A stretch of DNA of 64,000 nt from Schmidtea nova (taxonomy: Eukaryota): the NCBI GenBank assembly GCA_044892505.1, contig CM097882.1, positions 12,462,001 to 12,526,000 of the forward strand, in the 5' to 3' direction. A program made the position numbers and the translations under genes. Shown here piece by piece: positions 8,306 through 51,145 of this stretch. Numbering within the stretch: the first letter of the stretch is position 1; each line of letters opens with the position of its first letter. The notes under the pieces were generated by a model. That model ran no database searches, was not told the origin of the DNA, and was given only the letters and a program-made list of their open reading frames with translations.

Positions 8306-9763
8306 CCATCATTAATTTTTATCGGTTATATATACTTAGTCAACTTCGTGAGTAGCAATTGGTTTTAAGTAGGCCTCACCCGTCCGGTGAGTTGGTTGCA
8401 TTCAGAATGACGAGCGATGTATGTAGGACGGTAGGTTGGTAGATCATACTCAGTTGAGTTGGTTTTAACTCCGCTTGTAAACTCAATTTATTAAATCGCG
8501 CATCAGCACATCACGGCTTACGATATTATTCTTATGTTTATTTTAACAGACATTCTCCGTTATTCACCATTCATCTCATCAATAACTACCAATGACCATC
8601 ATTCTCTGGGTGATTTGGGTGATTCCCTAAAATTGGGTTCATTATTTAGCATATTTCCATTTCATGTTCGAATGTGTGTTTATTCATAATGCTTAGCGTT
8701 GGTTAAATGCGCTTTATACCATACGCTGTTGATTTATCGTTTCACCGCCTATTATACGCACTACAATTATCCCTGTTGGAATCATGGTTTATATAAGGTT
8801 ATAGACACCCCATGTGCACACACCCCCTTCCCGATTACCAAATAGTTAGAAAACTTATAGTCCCGCCGCATCGGTACCTCATATAAGAATATGTTGTACC
8901 GAGAGGCCAAGAATCCGCCAGGCTGTTAGGCCTCCGGAAAAGTCCTTATTGATTTTAATATGAATAATAATTATGAGGGTTTAAGCTAATAATATAGAAC
9001 ACAACTCGAATTTACCTTTTATTTCCACTTCCAAGTTGTTTACAAGGTTCAATTGTCAAATTCACACTCAGTAATTTGGTAAAATTTTAACGACTTACAC
9101 TTGGTAAAACAATAATGACATTCCCAATACTGATTTGACTTCAGTATATATACTCATTTGGTGTTGTTGGTCAGCCAATCAGCATCGAGTATGTGTGTCT
9201 GTCTGGTCATTCTTTTGTGTTTGTCGGCTTTTTGCTGTCTAATTTAACTCAATGATTTGTTTGTTTAATCATGCGGTAAGTTTATTTTGGTATGATTTAA
9301 TTTTAATTTTATTTTTGTTTCAGGTCTTCGGTGATGTCCGCCTACCTGTTGTCATTTTCAGATTTTATCTGATTCGCATGGGTGAGTTTTTAAGATTTAT
9401 GTTATTCTGATTAATGCTTTATTTCTTTTAGATGTTACCGCTTATTTGCTACCTTTTGGTGTTTGTAATTTATTTTGTTGTTATTTTTGTATATTTATTT
9501 TATTGATTGTGTATTATTTTTCAGATGCTGCTCGATTCGGCTGGCCCAACATCACTCGGGGTCCCCTAAAATTGCGTCCCGCAATTACATGCATATACCT
9601 ACATCAACATACTTAAAAAGTTCGTGACAGAATTTACATTCCGAACCACATAAGGTGGTAGCTTTTATACACATTCATACAAAGTCACGCATTGTCATTG
9701 TCATGTTTATATTGTTTATGGTTTATACACAGTTCAATGTTTCTGGCTCATAAGGGTCGATTT

Positions 9764-36924: not shown

Positions 36925-37843
36925 CTGAAAATTTATAAAATTCAGGAAAAGATTTTATTTATTTTAGGAAATTATTTAATGAAAAATTAAATTACACTAT
37001 CTAATTGGCCCAACAGTCCAGTAAAGCCAGTCTTTGTGAGTCTGCCAATGTTCGTAACGCTTGGAAATGATGTAAGAGAATATGCCAATTTTATGGGAGT
37101 TAAAAGTGAGTTAAGATTTTCTAAAATGAATCCATTTGGTGAAATTGAGCCATCAGAATTATTAATGCCAGTNNNNNNNNNNNNNNNNNNNNNNNNNNNN
37201 NNNNNNNNNNNNNNNNNNNNNNNNNNNNNNNNNNNNNNNNNNNNNNNNNNNNNNNNNNNNNNNNNNNNNNNNNNNNNNNNNNNNNNNNNNNNNNNNNNNN
37301 NNNNNNNNNNNNNNNNNNNNNNNNNNNNNNNNNNNNNNNNNNNNNNNNNNNNNNNNNNNNNNNNNNNNNNNNNNNNNNNNNNNNNNNNNNNNNNNNNNNN
37401 NNNNNNNNNNNNNNNNNNNNNNNNNNNNNNNNNNNNNNNNNNNNNNNNNNNNNNNNNNNNNNNNNNNNNNNNNNNNNNNNNNNNNNNNNNNNNNNNNNNN
37501 NNNNNNNNNNNNNNNNNNNNNNNNNNNNNNNNNNNNNNNNNNNNNNNNNNNNNNNNNNNNNNNNNNNNNNNNNNNNNNNNNNNNNNNNNNNNNNNNNNNN
37601 TATAAAAATTGTTGAGATCGAATCCATCACTGCGAGATTAGTTTGATCCGGAATATCTTTTTGAAAATTAAAAGTTGTTACATATTGTACTACTGTTACC
37701 TAAATAAGCATCATAATTACTATTCTGAAATAAACATGCGTGAAAAAATAAAGGTTTTACGGAATTATGTATGGATTTTAAGTTATCAAACTTATTTTGT
37801 TTATTATAAAATTTGACATAAAATTTATCATAAAATTTGATTA

Positions 37844-37885
37844 CTATAATTTATGAATACTAATTAAAACTTTATAAGGGTACAA

Positions 37886-37925
<40 letters not shown>

Positions 37926-38494
37926 TCTGATAATTTAAAATTTGTGGCAAGTGTTGCCGTTAAGATAATTCGTGCACTCCTCCAGAATTTCGAATCAGAA
38001 AGGCTTGATTTTCTGTCATCGTTGCTTGTCAAGTAATATCTAGAAGCGAAGTATTCCATAGTCCAATTTTCGATATTCTTTTGCATGATTTGGATTTGAC
38101 TGATATTCAAAGCTCTCGATTGAACCCATTTTTGCATCGATTTCTCATTGACTTCATCAATTCCACCTCTAATCAACTCTTTCGGCATGGCTTTCATAAT
38201 AATCAATTCAATCTGATCGATTGGCACTCGAGTAACGAAATTGTAGATCTTTCTTCTCAACAGCGCATTGATACACAACTTTACAGCCCACATTTCTTTT
38301 TCTTCTTCGGAGAACGGTTTGATATGATTAAACCATCTTAAAGCATGGAAATAGCAGTCTTTAATTGACGAACATGCTTGAAACACTTCAACATCAGCAG
38401 TAGATTGATAATATTCATTGATATAGTTTTCATTAAACAAATAATCGTTCAATTTTAATTGACAGATATCGATTTTCAGATTACCAAATTCCAT
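37844..38494 (-). CDS. Unassigned ~200-aa ORF ending in a (TA)n tract
   Basis: ATG-initiated, long open frame in AT-rich DNA; no motif recognised. Confidence 0.4.
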
Positions 38495-39091
38495 TTTTTC
38501 AAATTTAAAATCAAATTAAGAATCACTTTTATAATTTTCAAATTCACCAAAAGTTTACAAAAATTTTATTAATCCAATTGATTTGGATAAACAAAACAAA
38601 TCGTCCAAAAAATAGTTTTAATCCAAAAATCCAAATCAAAAATCAATCCAAATTAAAATGAATTGATCCGATTAAACAAAAGAATTAAGTCAGAAAATTC
38701 CAATTTTAGCAGCAAGAATCCCAAATTCCACCACTATCGAAAACAACTCGCACACAGACGCGAGAACAAATTCTTATCACAGAATCTCATCGTCTACACC
38801 ATTACGAGTTGGTGGTGTATTGCAAACGAGCAACAATGCACAATGACTCCATCTCAATTGTGATTGGACAGCCTCCATCAATCAAAAATTTCAATTATTC
38901 CTCAACATCCCCCTCTCCTTGACAACTTGTCAATTTTCAGTTAACATACCTAAACCAAATTAGCATTAACAATTACAATTTGCTATGACCACGACTAATA
39001 AAATTTAATTTAATTTTGTATCCCTCTTAACTACTATCAGGCGCAACTCATATTTTTTGGACTTTCTTAGCCAATTCCAATGGAAAAATTT

Positions 39092-40054
39092 TTACAAAAA
39101 TCTGGTTTTCTCTTTACCTTGACATTCAACCTTAACAACTCTGACCTTTCCATCACTACCTGGAATCAGTTCCTTAATTCTTACTAACGGCCATCGACCT
39201 TCTAAAATATTAGGTTCTAAAACCCAAACAACGTCACCTACTTTGACTTCTCTGTTTTCTTTCCACCATTTTTTCTTGTACCCCACATTGGTACGAGTTC
39301 TTTCTTCCACCTTTCCCAAAAATGGTTCACTATCTCCAAAATTCTTTTCCATCTTCTTTGGTAATCTACTCCTTCATTAGGGGTGATATCTTCTGTTCGA
39401 TCCAGTCCAGGCCATTTTGATAAAATAAAGTCATTTTGAGTTAGTGCAATATCTTCTTTGCCGTCACTGCATTGCACTGTCAAAGGGCGATAATTCAATA
39501 AGCCTTCTACTTTTATTAACACTGTATTCAGTTCTTCATCCGAAATGTCAGCCTCTCCAATAATTATTTTCATAGCTCTCTTTGCTGATTTTATTAAAGA
39601 CTCGAATATTCCTCCAAAATGCGATGCCGAAGGTGGATTAAATATCCATCTAATTTGATTAGCCAACAGTACTTTACTCATTTTATAAGAATCTATAACA
39701 AACTCTTGAACTTCTCCAGTTTCCCCAACAAAATTTGTTCCGTTGTCCGATAAGATCATTGACGGCTTTCCTCTTCTTCCTATGAATCTCATTAATGCTC
39801 GTACGAAAGCATCTGTATCTAATGAATATGCCATCTCACAATGAACCGCTCGCGTTTGTAAACAAGTGAATAAACAAAGATATCTTTTCTGCCTCACTTT
39901 ACCCCTTCCCTGAATTGTTTCAAATGGTCCTGCAAAATCTACAGCAACCTTTCCAAAGATTTGCATTGGTTCATCAAATCTGAATGAAGGTAGTGGAGCC
40001 ATTATTTGTTCCATCCCTTTAGCTCTTCTTTTTTTACATTCGTGACAATTATTT
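39092..40054 (-). pseudogene. pol: BEL/Pao integrase and C-terminal DUF5641-like tail
   Basis: VAVDFAGP, ILSDNGTNF, HFGGIFESLIKSAK; WPLVRIKELIPGSDGKVRVVKV in a shifted frame. Confidence 0.92.
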
Positions 40055-42286
40055 TCACACTCTTTGATACTGTCTGGCCCTTAATATCCAATATTCCTTA
40101 TTCATGTCACTCAATATATGGTTCACCCCAGCATAATGATTTCCTCTCCTATGATACTCTTTAATGATTAGTCTGGTGACCCAACTTTTATCACTCAGAA
40201 TAACTGGGTACCTTGCTTTAATTGTTAAAAATTCTGCATTAACTAGACGGCTCTTAGATCGAATAATTCTATCTTTATCTAAAATCGGATTCAGTTTTCT
40301 CAACTTACTTTTTTCCTGAACGGATTTGCTTTCATTCAACCTTTTGACTTCTTCTTTAAAATGCTTCTCTTGATCTGCCTTGATTATTCTTATTTCAATA
40401 TCTTCGATTTCTTCGGATTTCAGTTGACCCTTTCTTCTACCTTCAATTTGACACCTACAATTGTTAATATATCTGACTACCAAAGCATATACACACTTTA
40501 ACCTCACCCAGTCCGAATAAGATTCTGGTTCGAAACAATTCACACACGATTTAAAGTTCCGATTTTTTACTTCTGCTTTATTTGTGTACATGACCACTTT
40601 CTTAATTTCTTTACATATTGTCGGCATGTCGATGAATTCAGTCTTAGGCCATTCGTCTTTTTTTAACTGGAGAAATGTCGGTCCTTTTAACCACTCCTTT
40701 TTAACTTGCAGGTCCCTAGCAGACATTCCTCGTGAAATAAGATCTGCAGGATTTTCCTTTGTAGGCACATGCTTCCACTGGTTTGCTGATGTTTCAGACT
40801 GTATGCTTCCAACTCTATTACTCACAAATTGTTTGAATTTTCGCGCATGCTGTCGTATCAAATATAGCACATCCATGCTATCAGTCCAGAATGTAACTTC
40901 CCTAACATCGTAATTTATCGCTCTCGATATCTTTTTTGCCAATTTTAATCCGACACAAGCTCCTAGCAATTCCATCCTCGGAATACTAACCATTTTAACT
41001 GGAGCGACTTTTGACTTAGCCGCTATAAATCTAGTTTCTATGTTCTCTTTAGTTTGCTCTCTTAAATACGCTACCGCTCCGTAAGCTTTTTCAGAGGCAT
41101 CGGTAAATACATGAATAATCCATACGCTATTCACAGAACAAATTAAACATATAGGTATTTTAAACTCATTTAAATTCACTGCTTCTTCAAACCAACATTT
41201 TGCACTCATCTCTATTTCAATTGGTAATGGATCATCCCAATTGATTCCGGACATCCAAGTTGATTGCATTATCATCTTTCCTCTTACTACAAAGGTACTC
41301 AAAAACCCTAACGGATCGAATATTCTGGCTATCCAACTTAATAAAGTTCTTTTTGTTAATTTATTTGATTGAAATGGTTTCACCGAAAACTCAAAATAGT
41401 CTGGTCCTGATAACCATTTTAATCCTAACGTTTTCACTGTCATCCTTCCTTCCTCTTCAATACTCAATTTTGAAGCTCGATCTTTCAATGGAATGCTTTC
41501 CAACAATTTTTCAGAATTAGTTATCCACTTTTTTGCTTTCATTCCGGCCGTTTTCCAAATTATTTCTAAATCATTTTTTAACTCAAATGCCTCTACCTCT
41601 GATTCCACGGAATCTAAACTATCGTCCATGTAAGTGGATTTAATAACTGTTTCAGCAGCTCTTGGAAATTTATTCTCTAAATTTCTTGCATTCTCTTGAG
41701 TCACATACTGTGCTAAGTACGGAGAGGCATTTATTCCAAACACTAATCTATTAAATTCAAAAACTTTAATTTTCGCTTCATCTTTCCATAAAAATCTCAA
41801 ATATTTCCTATCTTCCTTAGCCACTGCTATTTGCAAAAACATTTCGGCAATATCGCATACGATTGCAATTCTATGTTTCCTAAACCGTAGCAAAACATCA
41901 AACAAGTCGTTTTGTAATTTTGGCCCTGTTTCTATTATATCATTCAAACAAGTTCCCCAATTTTTGGCAGCTGCGTCAAACACAATTTTTATTTTTGTCG
42001 ATTCTCTATCTCTTTTTATAACTGAGAAGTGTGGTAACAACCATTTATTTTCGGATTCCTCTGCCTTAGTAATTTCCCTTATATAATCTTTTCTTTCATG
42101 TTCTGCTATTACTTTTGAATACTCCTTTTTTAATATTGCATCTTTACTAAATCGTTCTTGTAAACTTTTCAATCTTTTTTCTGCCATGTTTCTATTTAAA
42201 ATCAATTCTGGTATTTCTTTTTTCCAAGGCAAACTAACTTCATATCTATTATCTTTATAATTTAATTGATTTTTCGTCTTATCCAT
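40055..42286 (-). pseudogene. pol: BEL/Pao reverse transcriptase and Pao RNase H
   Basis: KIVFDAAAK, DIAEMFLQI, RLVFGINASPY, YMDD, FTDASEKAYGAVAY, SIPRMELLGA, FWTDS, ENPADLISRG. Confidence 0.96.
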
Positions 42287-42509: not shown

Positions 42510-42962
42510 TCAATAGTTTTGGAGGTCTAAATAATCTACTCCAATCAAGACGTCAACTGTCTGCTTTCCATATAAGGACGGGAACGGAATTCCCTTTAAA
42601 TGAGGCCACGAGTGAGCTACTTTTGTCCAATCAATTACTTTCATATTCCCTGTAATTGATCTAAGAGCCAATGCTTTAAATATTTTAACTATTTTCCCTC
42701 CAGTATCCTTCAGGATCATTTCAACACTTCGATCTGGTATTCCCTCAGTTCTTCCACCAATAACCTTTATCGTTGTATTTATATCGCCTCCATCGAGTTT
42801 CAGTTCTGATGCAACTCTTTCGCTTACAAAGCTTGCCGTGCTAGCATCGTCTAACAGTGCGTTCAAAAATAATTGTTTGCCATTACTCTCTAAGATAATA
42901 GGAACAGTTCTCAAACTGAACAACTTTGTTGAATTTTTGACTTGTTTTTTCCCGATTTCCAT
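42510..42962 (-). pseudogene. BEL/Pao aspartic protease region
   Basis: LRTVPIIL...NALLDDASTASFV...DVLIGVD. Confidence 0.85.
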
Positions 42963-43010
42963 TAATGTTACTTGATTTTCTGGAGCCTTTAGAGTTGAAA
43001 AGTTATGTAA

Positions 43011-43919
43011 TCAATAATAATGCTTTTTTGTGCATCCGTCTACTTTACACATCATTTCCTTTTTACAATCCTTGACAATATGGTTGTTCTTGAGACAATT
43101 AAAACATAACTTTAATTCTTTGGCCTTGTTCAATCTTTGTTCCTGAGTCATTTCTTTGAACTTCTTGCACTGATTAATATAATGCTCTTCTGTACATATC
43201 AAACAAATCAATTTATCTTTCTTCAACTTCTTAAAAGCTGGGCATTGACTTTTAAAATGATTGCCTCCACAATTGAAACATCCAGTTTTATTAAATGACC
43301 CTTCATTGTCTTCACTAATCTGCACGTGAGACCTGAACTTTTGGTTTTGAGATCCAGTGTTAAAATTCCTTCGGTCTTCAAAAGTTCTCCTTAATGATTC
43401 AGTACCTCTTTTTATCTCAAAGATCTGTTTAGTTCTTTGCAATTTCTTTTGCAACCATTCCTGAAGACCTTTCACTCCTATTTTCTCTGGGTCTTCTATG
43501 TTCGAAGATACGATCATCCACTCGTCCAACATGGCTTCAGTTAATTGCTGGATTAACTTCTCATATATGAAACTTCTTCCAAGTTCGCTTTGTCTGCCCA
43601 TATCTTCCAAACTCACAATCAGTGTTTCCGTCAATTGTACCAACAATTCCATGTCTTTTACCTGACCTTCTCTTAATGGTCTAAATCTTTCTAATTCCTG
43701 TAAAAGACTAATATAAGCACGGTCGTTCCCTCCATAATTAATCTCCAGTTGTTCAAGCGCTGAATCATAAGCTTTAGCTGTGTGACCTAAATTTTCAATT
43801 AGTTTTAATGCTTCCCCTGCTAAATATTGACGTAGATGTTGAAGCTTTTCTTCCTTGGATCCAATTGCTTTATTGATACTTACTTCAAAGGCAGCTCTCC
43901 AAGTTCTATATTCTTTCAA
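43011..43919 (-). pseudogene. gag: BEL/Pao Gag (DUF1759-like region plus Cys/His knuckles)
   Basis: EYRTWRAAF...EKLQHLRQYLAGEALKLI...LEINYG; CFNCGGNHFKSQC, CLICTEEHYINQC, CFNCLKNNH, CKVDGCTKKH. Confidence 0.9.
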
Positions 43920-44290
43920 CTTACCATTAATTTTTTCATCTTACTTAGAGTAGGACCATGTTCCTCCGTTTTATAAGCTGGGGTCTGTGGTTCAACTTTT
44001 ACTTCTGTAAAACGATCGATTCGTTCATCTAAATCCTCACCTTTCTTTTCCAACTATAAAATATCTTTGGTAAGCTTTTTCACCTCACTTTCCTTTCCCA
44101 ATCTTTCACCTAATATTCTTAACTTTGCAAAATCTTCTAATGCCTTTTCATACTCCTCTTAGAATTGTAAATATATTTCAATGCAATTATCCTTACCTAA
44201 TGCCATCTTCACCTGATTCCTACTTCTTGTCAACCTATTCTTTCTCTTTGATACCTCCAGTAATCCTCCGAAAAATTCATTTTCATTACT

Positions 44291-44517
44291 TCCTCCCTTT
44301 AAACCCATTAACACTTGGACTGTGGAACCATGCTTAATTCCATGATCCTTCAATTTTGTCCCCTAACAGATGTTTTCCCCCATGAATTAAATTTTGATTT
44401 CTAATGGGAACCCCTTCTTTTCTAAAGATTATCCTTTTAAGGTCGTATATTGAGGAATTTATTTTTTATTTGGACTGTAACAACTTTGCCACTTAATGTC
44501 TTTACAAAAATTTGTAT
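44291..44517 (-). pseudogene. Ubiquitin-like domain ending LKGG, upstream of BEL gag (two small frameshifts)
   Basis: Joined frames read IQIFVKTLSGKVVTVQIKN-SSIYDLKRIIFRKEGVPIRNQNLIHGGKHLLGDK-LKDHGIKHGSTVQVLMGLKGG, colinear with ubiquitin MQIFVKTLTGK...KEGIPPDQQRLIFAGKQL...LRGG; 227 nt, about 76 codons. Confidence 0.85.
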
Positions 44518-46434
44518 ATCATTTGGGGATAAGGTATCCCATGACAACCTCCGAGGCCCATTACGGGGGGTGCCGTTATATGGCAAAAATAATACCCTAT
44601 CACAATATATTTTATTAAAATAAATTCCAAAAATCGCATCATGGCAAATTGTATTCATACCTGCTATTATCTGGTTTCCCAACATCGGTAACTCGGCGGT
44701 ATCTCCGGCATTTGGGAATCTCTTTGCATAGAGGACATCAGTCCTTGTCGCGCCTCTTGATCGCTCAAACTCATTAATATTATTCATAATAAAATTAAAG
44801 AGACCTTTTTCCTGGTGAGGATCGAAATTTCTTAAAGGCCCCCTCACCTGAGCCATCATTTTCTGAATTCTAGCGTCAATATATTCTTCAGTCACTTAAA
44901 TAGATCACACCAAATATAAAATAATGGTGGATCCATGTTTTGATGTAGAGGTTGTTAAAATTCTATGGTTTCTAGGGACACTAAAACTATGTATCCTTCA
45001 TGAAATTTCAACTTACCTCACTCTTGTACCTTTATCTACTCTTAAGTAATTATGTTGGTAATGTATACATTGACACGAGAACCAATGAGCAGGTGTGCTT
45101 CGTTTCCAAAATATACTCCTTATTGCATTTTCTTTTTGGATTCTTGTCTTGCGAAAGAAGATCTTACTCACAGAATTCTTTATATTTCTAAGGTTTATTC
45201 AATTATTGTTTTGTATCTTTTTAAAAAATCATTTACTACTAACTACCCATAGATTGAGTTATACCTTATCCTCTGATATACATCCATTGATCTCTAGAAA
45301 AGTTTTGACAGCGTACCGCTTGTATTTTCTCTACATGTATTTCTTTATCCTTTGATTTTAGGTTTTACTCTACTTCACCCGAATAGGTGCTAAATAAGTT
45401 CGCGAAAATTCGATTTGCGTACTAAATGCTTTATCTGGTGAGGGCATTGGCTCGAAAAACTCAAGCATGTACGTAAGTCTGATAGGAACGTTTAATGAAC
45501 CGAGAAGCAAATATCAAACTTAACTAAAGTTTTGCACAGTAACATTTCAATGCAAAATAAGAATAAATTTGCTGGGAAGGGAAAAGTTTCATTGATAATT
45601 TTTAGCGTCGTATTTATAGTGTTTTTCAATATTACATCCACGCACGCTGCTATCGAACTTCATGTTTTGTGATCAAACTTTTTCTCACCCACAACGTGAA
45701 TAAATTTCAGAAATTTTTGAAAATATTTTACATACCTACTCTATTAAAATGAATAATTTATTTTTTCTCGATAAAGTTATTTTTTAAAATTATTTTATTT
45801 ATTTTCTAATTATTTGTCATTAATTTTACTAAAATTACTTGTGTATTCATAATGGTGCCGTTCTACGCTAGTCAATCGATTAATTAAAACAATCCAATTT
45901 ATTCTAATTATCTGTTTGGTCATATCTACGCTTTTTAACGATATTTCAAAGGGATTTACAATATAAGTTTTAATAAAATTTTCTCTTTTTTTAGTACTAT
46001 TTTTATCATTGATCATCTTTTTCGTATTTTTTGTACTATCAATGATCTTTCCCTATTTAATTTTCATGCGGTTCTTTGTATGTAAATTTTATCAATCTTT
46101 TTCCTATCTTAATCAACTTTTACAACCGATTCGTTTGCTTATTGTGTTGTACCTCCCATCTCTAGAGTTTTATTATTTTAATTAATCATGTTTAATGACA
46201 CTTTTGTATTATATTTTATTTTATTTGATGTTTTTGGTGTCTTAGTGGATTTTGAATTTAGATATTGCAATGCTTGTGTATTTTCGACACATTAAAACAA
46301 TCAAAAATTCCACTTCAGTTAGCTTAACACTTGGTTGTAAAATATGTATCAAATTTTGTCCAATATTAGTAAGTAGATATTTACCGGTGTCAGTGTATTA
46401 GTAGGATAGTTTTGGACTTTCCAAAAGAAAAGAT

Positions 46435-49735: not shown

Positions 49736-49974
49736 GATGTCTTGTTTTATGTTTATTTTATGTAATTATTCCTTTAACAGTTTGTAAGCGCCGTCATTAC
49801 TATGGACGGTGCCCTTGCGGTCACCAGGAACCCCCCCTTTTTATTTTTATTTATTGTAAACTAATTAAAGAATTTAAATTATAAAATTTAAATTCTGAAT
49901 TCAAATAGCTTACTATAGGAAACTATAGTAAGCTGAATTCAGAATTAATAAAAAATTGATTGAAAAATATAACT

Positions 49975-50894
49975 AATTGAAAACGGGAAACGAATTGGAA
50001 ACAAATTGAAAACGAATTGAAAACGAATTGAAAACGAATTGAAAACGAATTGAAAACGAATTGAAAACGAATTGAAAACGAATTGAAAACGAATTGAAAA
50101 CGAATTGAAAACGAATTGAAAACGAATTGAAAACGAATTGGAAACAAATTGAAAACGAATTGAAAACGAATTGAAAACGAATTGAAAACGAATTGAAAAC
50201 GAATTGAAAACGAATTGAAAACGAATTGAAAACGAATTGAAAACGAATTGAAAACGAATTGAAAACGAATTGAAAACGAATTGAAAACGAATTGAAAACG
50301 AATTGAAAACGAATTGAAAACGAATTGAAAACGAATTGAAAACGAATTGAAAACGAATTGAAAACGAATTGGAAACGAATTGAAAACAAATTGAAAACAA
50401 ATTGAAAACGAATTGAAAACGAATTGAAAACGAATTGAAAACGAATTGAAAACGAATTGAAAACGAATTGAAAACGAATTGAAAACGAATTGAAAACGAA
50501 TTGAAAACGAATTGAAAACGAATTGAAAACGAATTGAAAACGAATTGAAAACGAATTGAAAACGAATTGAAAACGAATTGAAAACGAATTGAAAACGAAT
50601 TGAAAACGAATTGGAAACGAATTGAAAACAAATTGAAAACAAATTGAAAACGAATTGAAAACGAATTGAAAACGAATTGAAAACGAATTGAAAACGAATT
50701 GAAAACGAATTGAAAACGAATTGAAAACGAATTGAAAACGAATTGAAAACGAATTGAAAACGAATTGAAAACGAATTGAAAACGAATTGAAGACGAATTG
50801 AAAACGAATTGAAAACGAATTGAAAACGAATTGAAAACGAATTGAAAACGAATTGAAAACGAATTGAAAACGAATTGAAAATGAATTGAAAACG
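49975..50894. repeat. 11-bp satellite (AATTGAAAACG), ~84 copies
   Basis: Directly visible; rare variants (GGAAAC, AAAACAAA) recur at two places. Confidence 0.97.
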
Positions 50895-51145
50895 AAACTC
50901 TATAAAGTAACTTCTGTAAAATTGTATATTTGACAATATCTGGTTATAGTTAATAATTAATTTATCACATTGTTTATTATTTTATTTTGTCACTTATAAT
51001 CTACCAATACACAGCATACACCCCGAGTGTCCCCACAACAATCGGGCTGACTCTCTCGGGTCCTACAACTCTTCTTCTCATTCGTAAACGTTCACATACA
51101 CAAACAACTAAACTCATTTTGAACAGCGCATAGACCATTAATAAC

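Follow-up and report, generated by a model that had tools for sequence, protein, structure and literature searches.

Natural ubiquitin fusions are cut by deubiquitinases (DUBs) after Gly76 unless a proline follows, as work on ubiquitin fusions and the N-end rule has established. In cytopathogenic pestiviruses such as bovine viral diarrhoea virus (BVDV), ubiquitin-coding insertions are found directly upstream of NS3, as sporadic RNA-virus recombinants that arise in infected animals. Transduction of host genes by retroelements is likewise known, from the capture of oncogenes by retroviruses, from the maize element Bs1 and from plant long terminal repeat (LTR) elements that carry gene fragments. 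Here we describe a family of BEL/Pao LTR retrotransposons of Schmidtea nova in which a ubiquitin-like domain (UBL) stands in frame immediately before Gag. The family is represented by a damaged copy on the minus strand of a 64,000-nucleotide stretch of DNA (assembly GCA_044892505.1, contig CM097882.1, positions 12,462,001 to 12,526,000 of the forward strand), referred to here as the window and numbered from its first letter. Our literature search, which left most subscription journals outside and is no proof of absence, turned up no retrotransposon Gag reported to carry a fused ubiquitin.

As in BVDV, a host-derived ubiquitin is placed immediately N-terminal to a protein whose N-terminus cellular ubiquitin C-terminal hydrolases create in the virus and would create here, and partial extra ubiquitin pieces occur beside a complete monomer, here in a sister family. 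Unlike the viral insertions, the fusion in the window family is heritable, is found clade-wide in LTR retrotransposons and lies at the N-terminus of Gag; its ubiquitin has diverged to ~46% identity, and cleavage is predicted. The arrangement also recalls polyubiquitin, Ub-eL40/UBA52 and Ub-eS31/RPS27A, in which DUBs remove a 76-residue ubiquitin with a Gly-Gly end from the protein encoded in frame after it, and host polyubiquitin and ubiquitin-ribosomal-fusion genes are present in the same genome. However, cellular fusions begin with ubiquitin and its own Met and, in the UBA52/RPS27A type, continue into a ribosomal protein, whereas here residue 1 is Ile, a leader of 257-296 codons precedes, Gag follows, and Arg42 and Arg72 have been lost. 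Like canonical BEL/Pao elements (Pao, BEL, Sinbad), the family has LTRs with TG..CA ends, a primer-binding site (PBS), a polypurine tract (PPT), a Gag with DUF1759 and CCHC zinc knuckles, and the DUF1758/A17, reverse transcriptase, rve and DUF5641 domains in one frame. It departs from them in having a frame that opens within the LTR and reads across the PBS, a leader made of host cDNA fragments, and a ubiquitin fold in place of the initiator Met of Gag. Intron-less pieces of host mRNA embedded in the element and fused to Gag-region sequence are a feature shared with transducing retroelements, but in this case the pieces lie in the LTR (on the R/U5 side) and leader of autonomous amplifying elements, not of defective derivatives, and they precede the module that would separate them from Gag.

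The window minus strand was translated in three frames from 45200 to 43000, with the domains of the open reading frames (ORFs) typed by Pfam. This confirmed the central claim of a first-pass annotation, that a UBL directly precedes a BEL/Pao Gag: in order, there is an open stretch (44437-44895), the UBL (44517 to 44291, IQIFVKTL...LMGLKGG), ~125 Gag N-terminal codons and the Gag ORF (43011-43919). Natural copies were compared pairwise, with the broken frames of the window copy read piecewise and runs of N kept as they are. The UBL had been described as 76 codons ending in LKGG; the ending is as described, but in the window the domain is not intact and is spread over three frames by frameshifts at two places, one near 44467-44472 and the other near 44360, located against an intact copy. 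An ad hoc ubiquitin profile run on the window at E<=1 detected only this UBL (44291-44517), in pieces, and did not pick up the UBLs lacking Gly-Gly that the first-pass annotation places in a giant element. Two stops and one frameshift, said to separate the UBL from gag, were indeed found (stops at 44159-44161 and 44054-44056 before DUF1759; the frameshift is a 16-nt deletion near 43931), a further stop at 43008-43010 parts Gag from the protease, and more lesions lie downstream. Homology to all other copies begins at 44876, ~35 nt downstream of the expected end of the 5' LTR, and the 5' LTR and PBS are therefore absent from the window copy, in line with the failure of a search within the window to find any LTR pair. 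Of the ~128-residue region that had been noted upstream of the UBL, 119 codons (44518-44874) belong to the element, but the remainder is flank and the GTG at 44895 is no real start. The window copy is dead and has lost its 5' end; the BEL/Pao LTR retrotransposon family to which it belongs was recently active.

A DNA search of the 1.25-Gb genome with window positions 43900-44900 gave 101 candidates, 40 of which were scored. At least 39 other places match at 92-95% identity, and the UBL is spanned in every one. Among 19 sampled copies, 12 have no indel and an uninterrupted frame of 830 codons between the leader module and the end of the locus, and in 10 the frame is unbroken from within the LTR as far as the end of a 4-kb locus. 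Full-length copies have LTR pairs of 873, 704 and 700 nt that are 99.66-100% identical, and the longest single frames in them reach 2098 codons, covering leader, UBL with its Gly-Gly, Gag, protease, reverse transcriptase and integrase; the Pfam order in an intact copy is ubiquitin, DUF1759, RVT_1, Peptidase_A17, rve and DUF5641. The proposal to look for intact members with a single ORF was thus borne out, with many copies having one frame over leader, UBL and Gag-Pol. The near-identical LTR pairs and intact frames indicate that the family was active very recently. By its Gag, its Pol and its LTRs, PBS and PPT the family is a BEL/Pao LTR retrotransposon, and its polyprotein includes the UBL, in frame, as an integral part.

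The intact UBL of the window family scores 59.6 bits against Pfam PF00240 (E=2.5e-16; cut-off 25.4), far above what chance would give, and aligns without gaps to ubiquitin 1-76 at ~46% identity. Residues L8, I44, K48, L73, G75 and G76 are kept, and the changes include M1I, R42N, K63H, H68Q, R72G and R74K. The tail reads M-G-L-K-G-G and is followed by Ser, which preserves the Leu73-x-Gly75-Gly76 pattern with a residue other than Pro next to it. An AlphaFold2 (AF2) model from a 10-row alignment gives a beta-grasp with a predicted local distance difference test score (pLDDT) of 85-91 over residues 1-72 and three long helices that form the Gag N-terminal region; between them the K-G-G tail has a pLDDT <50. 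Such a flexible tail between two predicted folded parts is compatible with access by a DUB. Foldseek comparison of the UBL model with solved ubiquitin structures gave template-modelling (TM) scores of 0.92-0.96 and a root-mean-square deviation of 0.8-1.9 A. The first Met after the Gly-Gly lies past the conserved basic motif of Gag, and with Ile at UBL position 1 this means that Gag would be made only within a longer precursor started upstream. Both R42 and R72 are needed for charging by the E1 enzyme Uba1; the window family has Asn42 and Gly72, while both arginines are present in the sister family. Activation of the window-family UBL by E1 is therefore unlikely, which favours a processing signal over a conjugatable modifier. 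The suggestion that a conjugatable UBL is released is weakened by the loss of these two residues and by the N-terminal extension of ~250-330 residues that it would be expected to carry.

The junction is not confined to the window family. A search of the genome with PF00240 gave 2602 candidates, of which 150 were scored; these comprise host polyubiquitin, ubiquitin-ribosomal-fusion genes and >100 near-canonical ubiquitins in open frames of up to 2343 codons. These long frames represent a second, far more abundant BEL/Pao family, whose ubiquitin is ~92% identical to that of the host. In this sister family an LTR-borne start with other host-like cargo is followed by the same in-frame PBS (GSRAWFP), then by glutathione-reductase-like and HSP70 fragments, a ubiquitin-repeat tail, a complete ubiquitin ending in LRGG, and Gag. 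The Gag N-terminus of the sister family (N-D-E-E-E-F and a basic motif) is homologous to that of the window family (S-N-E-N-E-F-F and a basic motif), and the two families can be aligned at the LTR end with the PBS and over the ubiquitin-Gag region only. The LTR frame starts of the sister family vary, and in one of them, judged by eye, what looks like a calmodulin N-terminus precedes a HECT-like piece.

Relatives were also found outside this genome. An exhaustive HMMER search with Gag alone against 1.84 billion representative proteins yielded 10763 matches, and among the best 150, which were inspected, six have ubiquitin or a UBL immediately before the Gag N-terminus. All six lie on metagenome contigs, and they are exactly those whose alignment reaches the Gag N-terminus; the closest has a full UBL that starts IQIF and ends LKLRGG, and another carries an HSP90 fragment upstream of its ubiquitin. 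Relatives without ubiquitin (e.g. from the clam Mya arenaria) have their initial Met at the position of the Gly-Gly of the others, and an acidic patch and the basic motif come after it. Word-based searches for UBL-Gag relatives returned polyubiquitins and ubiquitin-less Gags only. In a Gag tree of 66 rows the eight ubiquitin-bearing rows fall on one side of a branch with a Shimodaira-Hasegawa-like approximate likelihood ratio test (SH-aLRT) support of 88-93, and the trait requires one change, a number as low being reached in 5 of 500 label shuffles. The most economical history is therefore one capture event, from a polyubiquitin transcript, and the joining of ubiquitin to Gag is ancient within a BEL/Pao subclade.

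Over this depth the module has been held in shape. Across the clade, the UBL and Gag N-terminus are only 31-43% identical to the window family, with L73 and G76 invariant and G75, L8 and K48 nearly so, and in 8 of 9 members the UBL is 76 residues long without indels. The residue after the Gly-Gly is S, N, G or M and never P. In four lineages Ile replaces the Met1 of ubiquitin, from which it follows that translation must begin upstream. Between the sister-family ubiquitin and host ubiquitin genes, the proportion of synonymous differences (pS) is ~0.8, which is saturated, as among the host genes themselves, and that of non-synonymous differences (pN) is 0.05. The ratio of non-synonymous to synonymous change (omega) between sister-family subfamilies is 0.10-0.26.

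The LTRs of the window family have TG..CA ends, starting with TGTTGAGG and finishing with AAACA; in full copies a PPT precedes the 3' LTR and an 18-nt PBS sits 2 nt past the 5' LTR. The PBS is exactly complementary to the 3' end, including CCA, of the host tRNA-Met(CAT). Genes for this tRNA form a tandem array with a period of ~458 nt (G000:C1:510090955-510136352 and beyond, loci L062-L064), with ~1006 pattern matches genome-wide, and their 3' end complements the PBS of both ubiquitin-Gag families. The start of the long frame lies 320-413 nt into the LTR; from there the frame continues past the LTR end and over the PBS, whose codons read GSRAWFP. The leaders, of 257-472 codons (257-296 in the window family), contain no in-frame stop, while their other two frames have 19-61 stops (19-27 for leaders of 257-296 codons), and none of 20000 shuffled leaders was stop-free. 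On the minus strand of the window, TATAAAAG is found at 38526-38533, ~35 nt upstream of the LTR-borne ATG (38494). This TATAAAAG is a candidate core promoter, with which ATG 38494 would be the first start codon of the transcript; in so AT-rich a genome the motif may have arisen by chance.

What is encoded ahead of the UBL is a mosaic of host cDNA and an orphan module. Both in the window LTR and in one other LTR variant, the LTR frame opens with the N-terminal domain of elongation factor 1-beta (eEF1B-beta), which takes up its first ~75 residues (matches to PDB 5dqs_D with E=1.3e-12 and 3.9e-11, respectively), and the piece starts at the Met codon of the eEF1B-beta gene itself. The host eEF1B gene, found via its EF1_GNE domain, has ~84% protein identity to the LTR piece and contains a short intron that is absent from the LTR copy, which indicates capture from mRNA. 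Elsewhere in the genome, locus L067 (G000:C1:271180224-271183388) holds an intron-less, stop-containing copy of eEF1B-beta with 82-84% DNA identity to the LTR cargo; it looks like a processed pseudogene, possibly tied to the capture event. A PCI-domain piece of the proteasome lid subunit PSMD13/Rpn9 follows eEF1B-beta in the window LTR, of which a second LTR variant keeps a decayed trace only, and a third variant carries PSMD13 residues ~96-164 instead (E=0.003). A comparison of two LTR variants gives the eEF1B piece an omega of 0.37 and the remaining LTR frame one of 0.67. Constraint on this frame is mild at best, and it reads more as a series of passengers that need an open frame than as working domains. 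The 119-residue module between PBS and UBL gave no match in Pfam or among PDB sequences, sub-threshold hits only in the ESM Atlas, and no word-based protein match with partners of ~205-651 and 1150-3650 residues covered; it cannot be aligned to the sister-family leader, and its single-sequence AF2 model has a pLDDT of 31.

The reading that we favour, and hold with moderate confidence from these sequence comparisons, is that an anciently acquired and selectively kept ubiquitin module lets host DUBs cut Gag from a translated leader. In intact members the frame opens in the 5' LTR, passes through the pieces of host cDNA, the PBS and the 119-residue module, and reaches the UBL ending in L-K-G-G, after which come Gag, without a Met of its own, and PR-RT-RH-IN. 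Host DUBs would then cut after Gly76 co-translationally, as with polyubiquitin, the ubiquitin-ribosomal-protein fusions and the pestivirus insertions, and Gag-Pol would receive a defined N-terminus (Ser in the window family) regardless of what had been translated upstream. The leader-UBL piece would be released as a by-product and in the window family is probably not conjugated. Cleavage after the Gly-Gly is plausible, with indirect support from the conservation of L73, G75 and G76, the want of a Met at the start of Gag and the avoidance of Pro after the Gly-Gly. That LTRs and leaders are a changing patchwork of host fragments would be accounted for, because the cut would leave the leader free to vary. 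In a bolder form of the idea, which we put forward tentatively and think rather doubtful, the Gly-Gly module is a universal 'cut here' adaptor and the LTR with its leader a cargo bay, some of whose shed fragments are kept for tampering with host proteostasis or translation. Any piece of host mRNA landing there in frame, start codon included, would be translated and later shed from Gag, and the shed, ubiquitin-tailed fragments proposed for such a role are PSMD13, eEF1B-beta, HSP70/HSP90, calmodulin-like and HECT-like pieces.

It is unlikely that the UBL instead stays on Gag, as a docking module for the proteasome or shuttle receptors, for the endosomal sorting complexes required for transport (ESCRT) or for ubiquitin-binding domains, or as an aid to folding or solubility. 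Many cellular proteins do bear uncleaved N-terminal UBL domains, and a retained domain would suit the patch positions L8, I44 and V70, which remain hydrophobic, the nearly invariant K48 and the departure of the window-family tail from LRLRGG. However, uncleaved integral UBL domains are generally without a C-terminal Gly-Gly, whereas G75, G76 and L73 are here the best-kept tail positions over very divergent members. Every Gag would also have to drag along 250-470 variable host-derived residues, from a leader that is wholly different between and within families that conserve Gag, and the N-terminal motif of Gag matches the extreme N-terminus of the ubiquitin-less relatives. We consider it distinctly improbable that the leader-UBL is the selected product, as a conjugated effector or a decoy that brings host fragments to bear against proteostasis or defence, with the cleavage of Gag secondary. 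The cargo is enriched in genes of proteostasis and translation (PSMD13, eEF1B-beta, HSP70 and HSP90), the eEF1B-like piece has an omega of 0.37 between LTR variants and the near-canonical ubiquitin of the sister family retains R42 and R72, all of which would fit such a role. Yet R42N and R72G speak against E1 activation in the window family, and the cargo consists of 60-80-residue pieces of larger domains that have eroded differently in three LTR variants and turn over between close relatives, with an omega of 0.67 for the remaining LTR frame.

A neutral origin and persistence, with the UBL a hitch-hiker from template switching onto a ubiquitin cDNA that has lasted through the youth of the family, is highly improbable. 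The leader plainly gathers host fragments, and copies of the window family differ in the UBL by 1-4 non-synonymous changes and no synonymous one, as might be seen in such a passenger. However, the domain is ~46% identical to host ubiquitin with synonymous sites saturated, which makes the capture old, the junction is common to relatives whose Gag is ~30-35% identical, and length, core and Gly-Gly have been kept over that depth, over which a neutral insert would have been lost. The first-pass annotation had itself named two outcomes that would undo its interpretation, namely that other copies lack the UBL or that an unrelated ubiquitin pseudogene happens to lie beside a 5'-truncated BEL/Pao element. 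The frameshifts in the UBL and the truncation of the window copy, which is real, give the latter its appeal, but its probability is negligible: the UBL is integral and in frame, not a neighbouring pseudogene, and all 39 other copies carry it, in the same place and in frame with Gag, which refutes this explanation and leaves neither outcome standing.

Several points nevertheless weigh against the proposal that host DUBs free Gag from its leader. The window-family tail is MGLKGG and not LRLRGG, and R42, R72 and H68 are changed; some DUBs depend on R72 or R74, so that the efficiency of cleavage is uncertain for this tail. One public relative ends in E-G instead of G-G, although it may be a decayed copy. 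Between the window and an intact copy, omega for the UBL is 0.28 on just 3 synonymous and 3 non-synonymous changes (Gag, 0.13-0.18), and the UBLs of intact window-family copies are separated by 1-4 non-synonymous changes and no synonymous one, which is too little for selection on this UBL to be demonstrable. In this within-family comparison copy L003 carries an indel that shifts the fixed frame, and its downstream values were ignored. The AF2 model supports the fold but is not independent support, because the alignment from which it was made held true ubiquitin, and the Gag tree came from a rapid search and has long branches. Use of the LTR Met and a start of transcription in the LTR are deduced from sequence, and the leader might be spliced out. 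The only public runs found to contain the element are four in number and none is an RNA run; their contigs look like DNA, with flank junctions at the LTR ends and an even depth of ~200-500.

Table 1. Features of the window copy and examples of the sister family. Positions refer to the window unless a locus is named.
Feature	Position	Strand	Basis
Flank outside the element, with the apparent GTG start of a 152-residue ORF	44877..44895	-	homology of all family copies begins at 44876
Leader module of 119 codons, starting ARIQKMM; coding part 44518-44874	44518..44876	-	family homology
UBL, equivalent to ubiquitin residues 1-76, ending LKGG; two frameshifts in the window copy	44291..44517	-	three-frame translation, profile
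Gag N-terminal region: acidic patch, basic K/R..LTRxRN motif, predicted long helices	43920..44290	-	alignment, AF2
Gag core, DUF1759 and CCHC zinc knuckles	43011..43919	-	Pfam DUF1759 E=2.2e-12, zf-CCHC E=2.6e-4
Aspartic protease region	42510..42962	-	weak Pfam matches to Asp_protease_2 and DUF1758
Reverse transcriptase and Pao-type Peptidase_A17 region	40055..42286	-	Pfam Peptidase_A17 2.2e-47, RVT_1 1.8e-10
Integrase (rve core) and C-terminal region, two overlapping ORFs	39092..40014	-	Pfam rve 7.9e-08
PPT, adjoining the 3' LTR on its upstream side	38908..38920	-	comparison with full copies
3' LTR, 986 nt, TG..CA ends; abuts a (TA)n run	37922..38907	-	comparison with other copies
LTR-borne start of the long frame: intron-less eEF1B-beta N-terminal domain, Met at 38494	38270..38494	-	PDB 5dqs_D E=1.3e-12
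PSMD13/Rpn9 C-terminal PCI-domain fragment (human residues ~300-359), in frame in the LTR	38054..38242	-	E=2.7e-09
Sister-family examples	L042-L059, e.g. L058:2228-9256, L059:1175-8044		Pfam, alignment

The remaining features of the window copy are those of a decayed BEL/Pao element (Table 1). The division of the integrase into two overlapping ORFs implies a frameshift, and the 3' LTR belongs to a third LTR variant, with 81-87% identity to the LTRs of other copies. A (TA)n run at 37836-37921 follows this LTR, and other copies also lie in or near AT-rich microsatellites, with (ATT)n-like sequence on both sides of one (L024:1062-1153 and 8924-9292) and similar flanks at L026. Where read contigs have loose ends at the edge of the LTR, these too have the sequence TATTATTATT. 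This neighbourhood may reflect a target-site preference. At locus L025 (G000:C3:49660001-49670000) at least three elements lie head to tail in an array and have LTRs in common, with a period of 7441 nt and 100% identity, which suggests either very recent tandem formation or a collapse or expansion in the assembly. Away from the element, a long tandem repeat on the minus strand of the window (49923-50936) yields a 337-residue ORF of reiterated FSIRFQFVFNS units, and is probably a satellite and not a gene.

For the genomes concerned, the thousands of ubiquitin-coding transposable-element copies (2602 candidates) will contaminate the annotation of ubiquitin, HSP70, eEF1B and PSMD13 here and in relatives. 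The family and its relatives offer ubiquitins that range naturally from nearly canonical to strongly diverged and are presumably selected only for folding and for cleavage at Gly76, a series useful for asking about the minimal needs of DUBs. If the release of Gag by host DUBs is real, it would explain the drift of the ubiquitin to 46% identity with fold and tail kept, as well as the toleration of a translated leader with its start in the LTR and the PBS in its path, and the gathering of host gene fragments within it. The N-terminal maturation of Gag would then have been outsourced to ubiquitous host enzymes, a strategy not described for retrotransposons in the literature searched.

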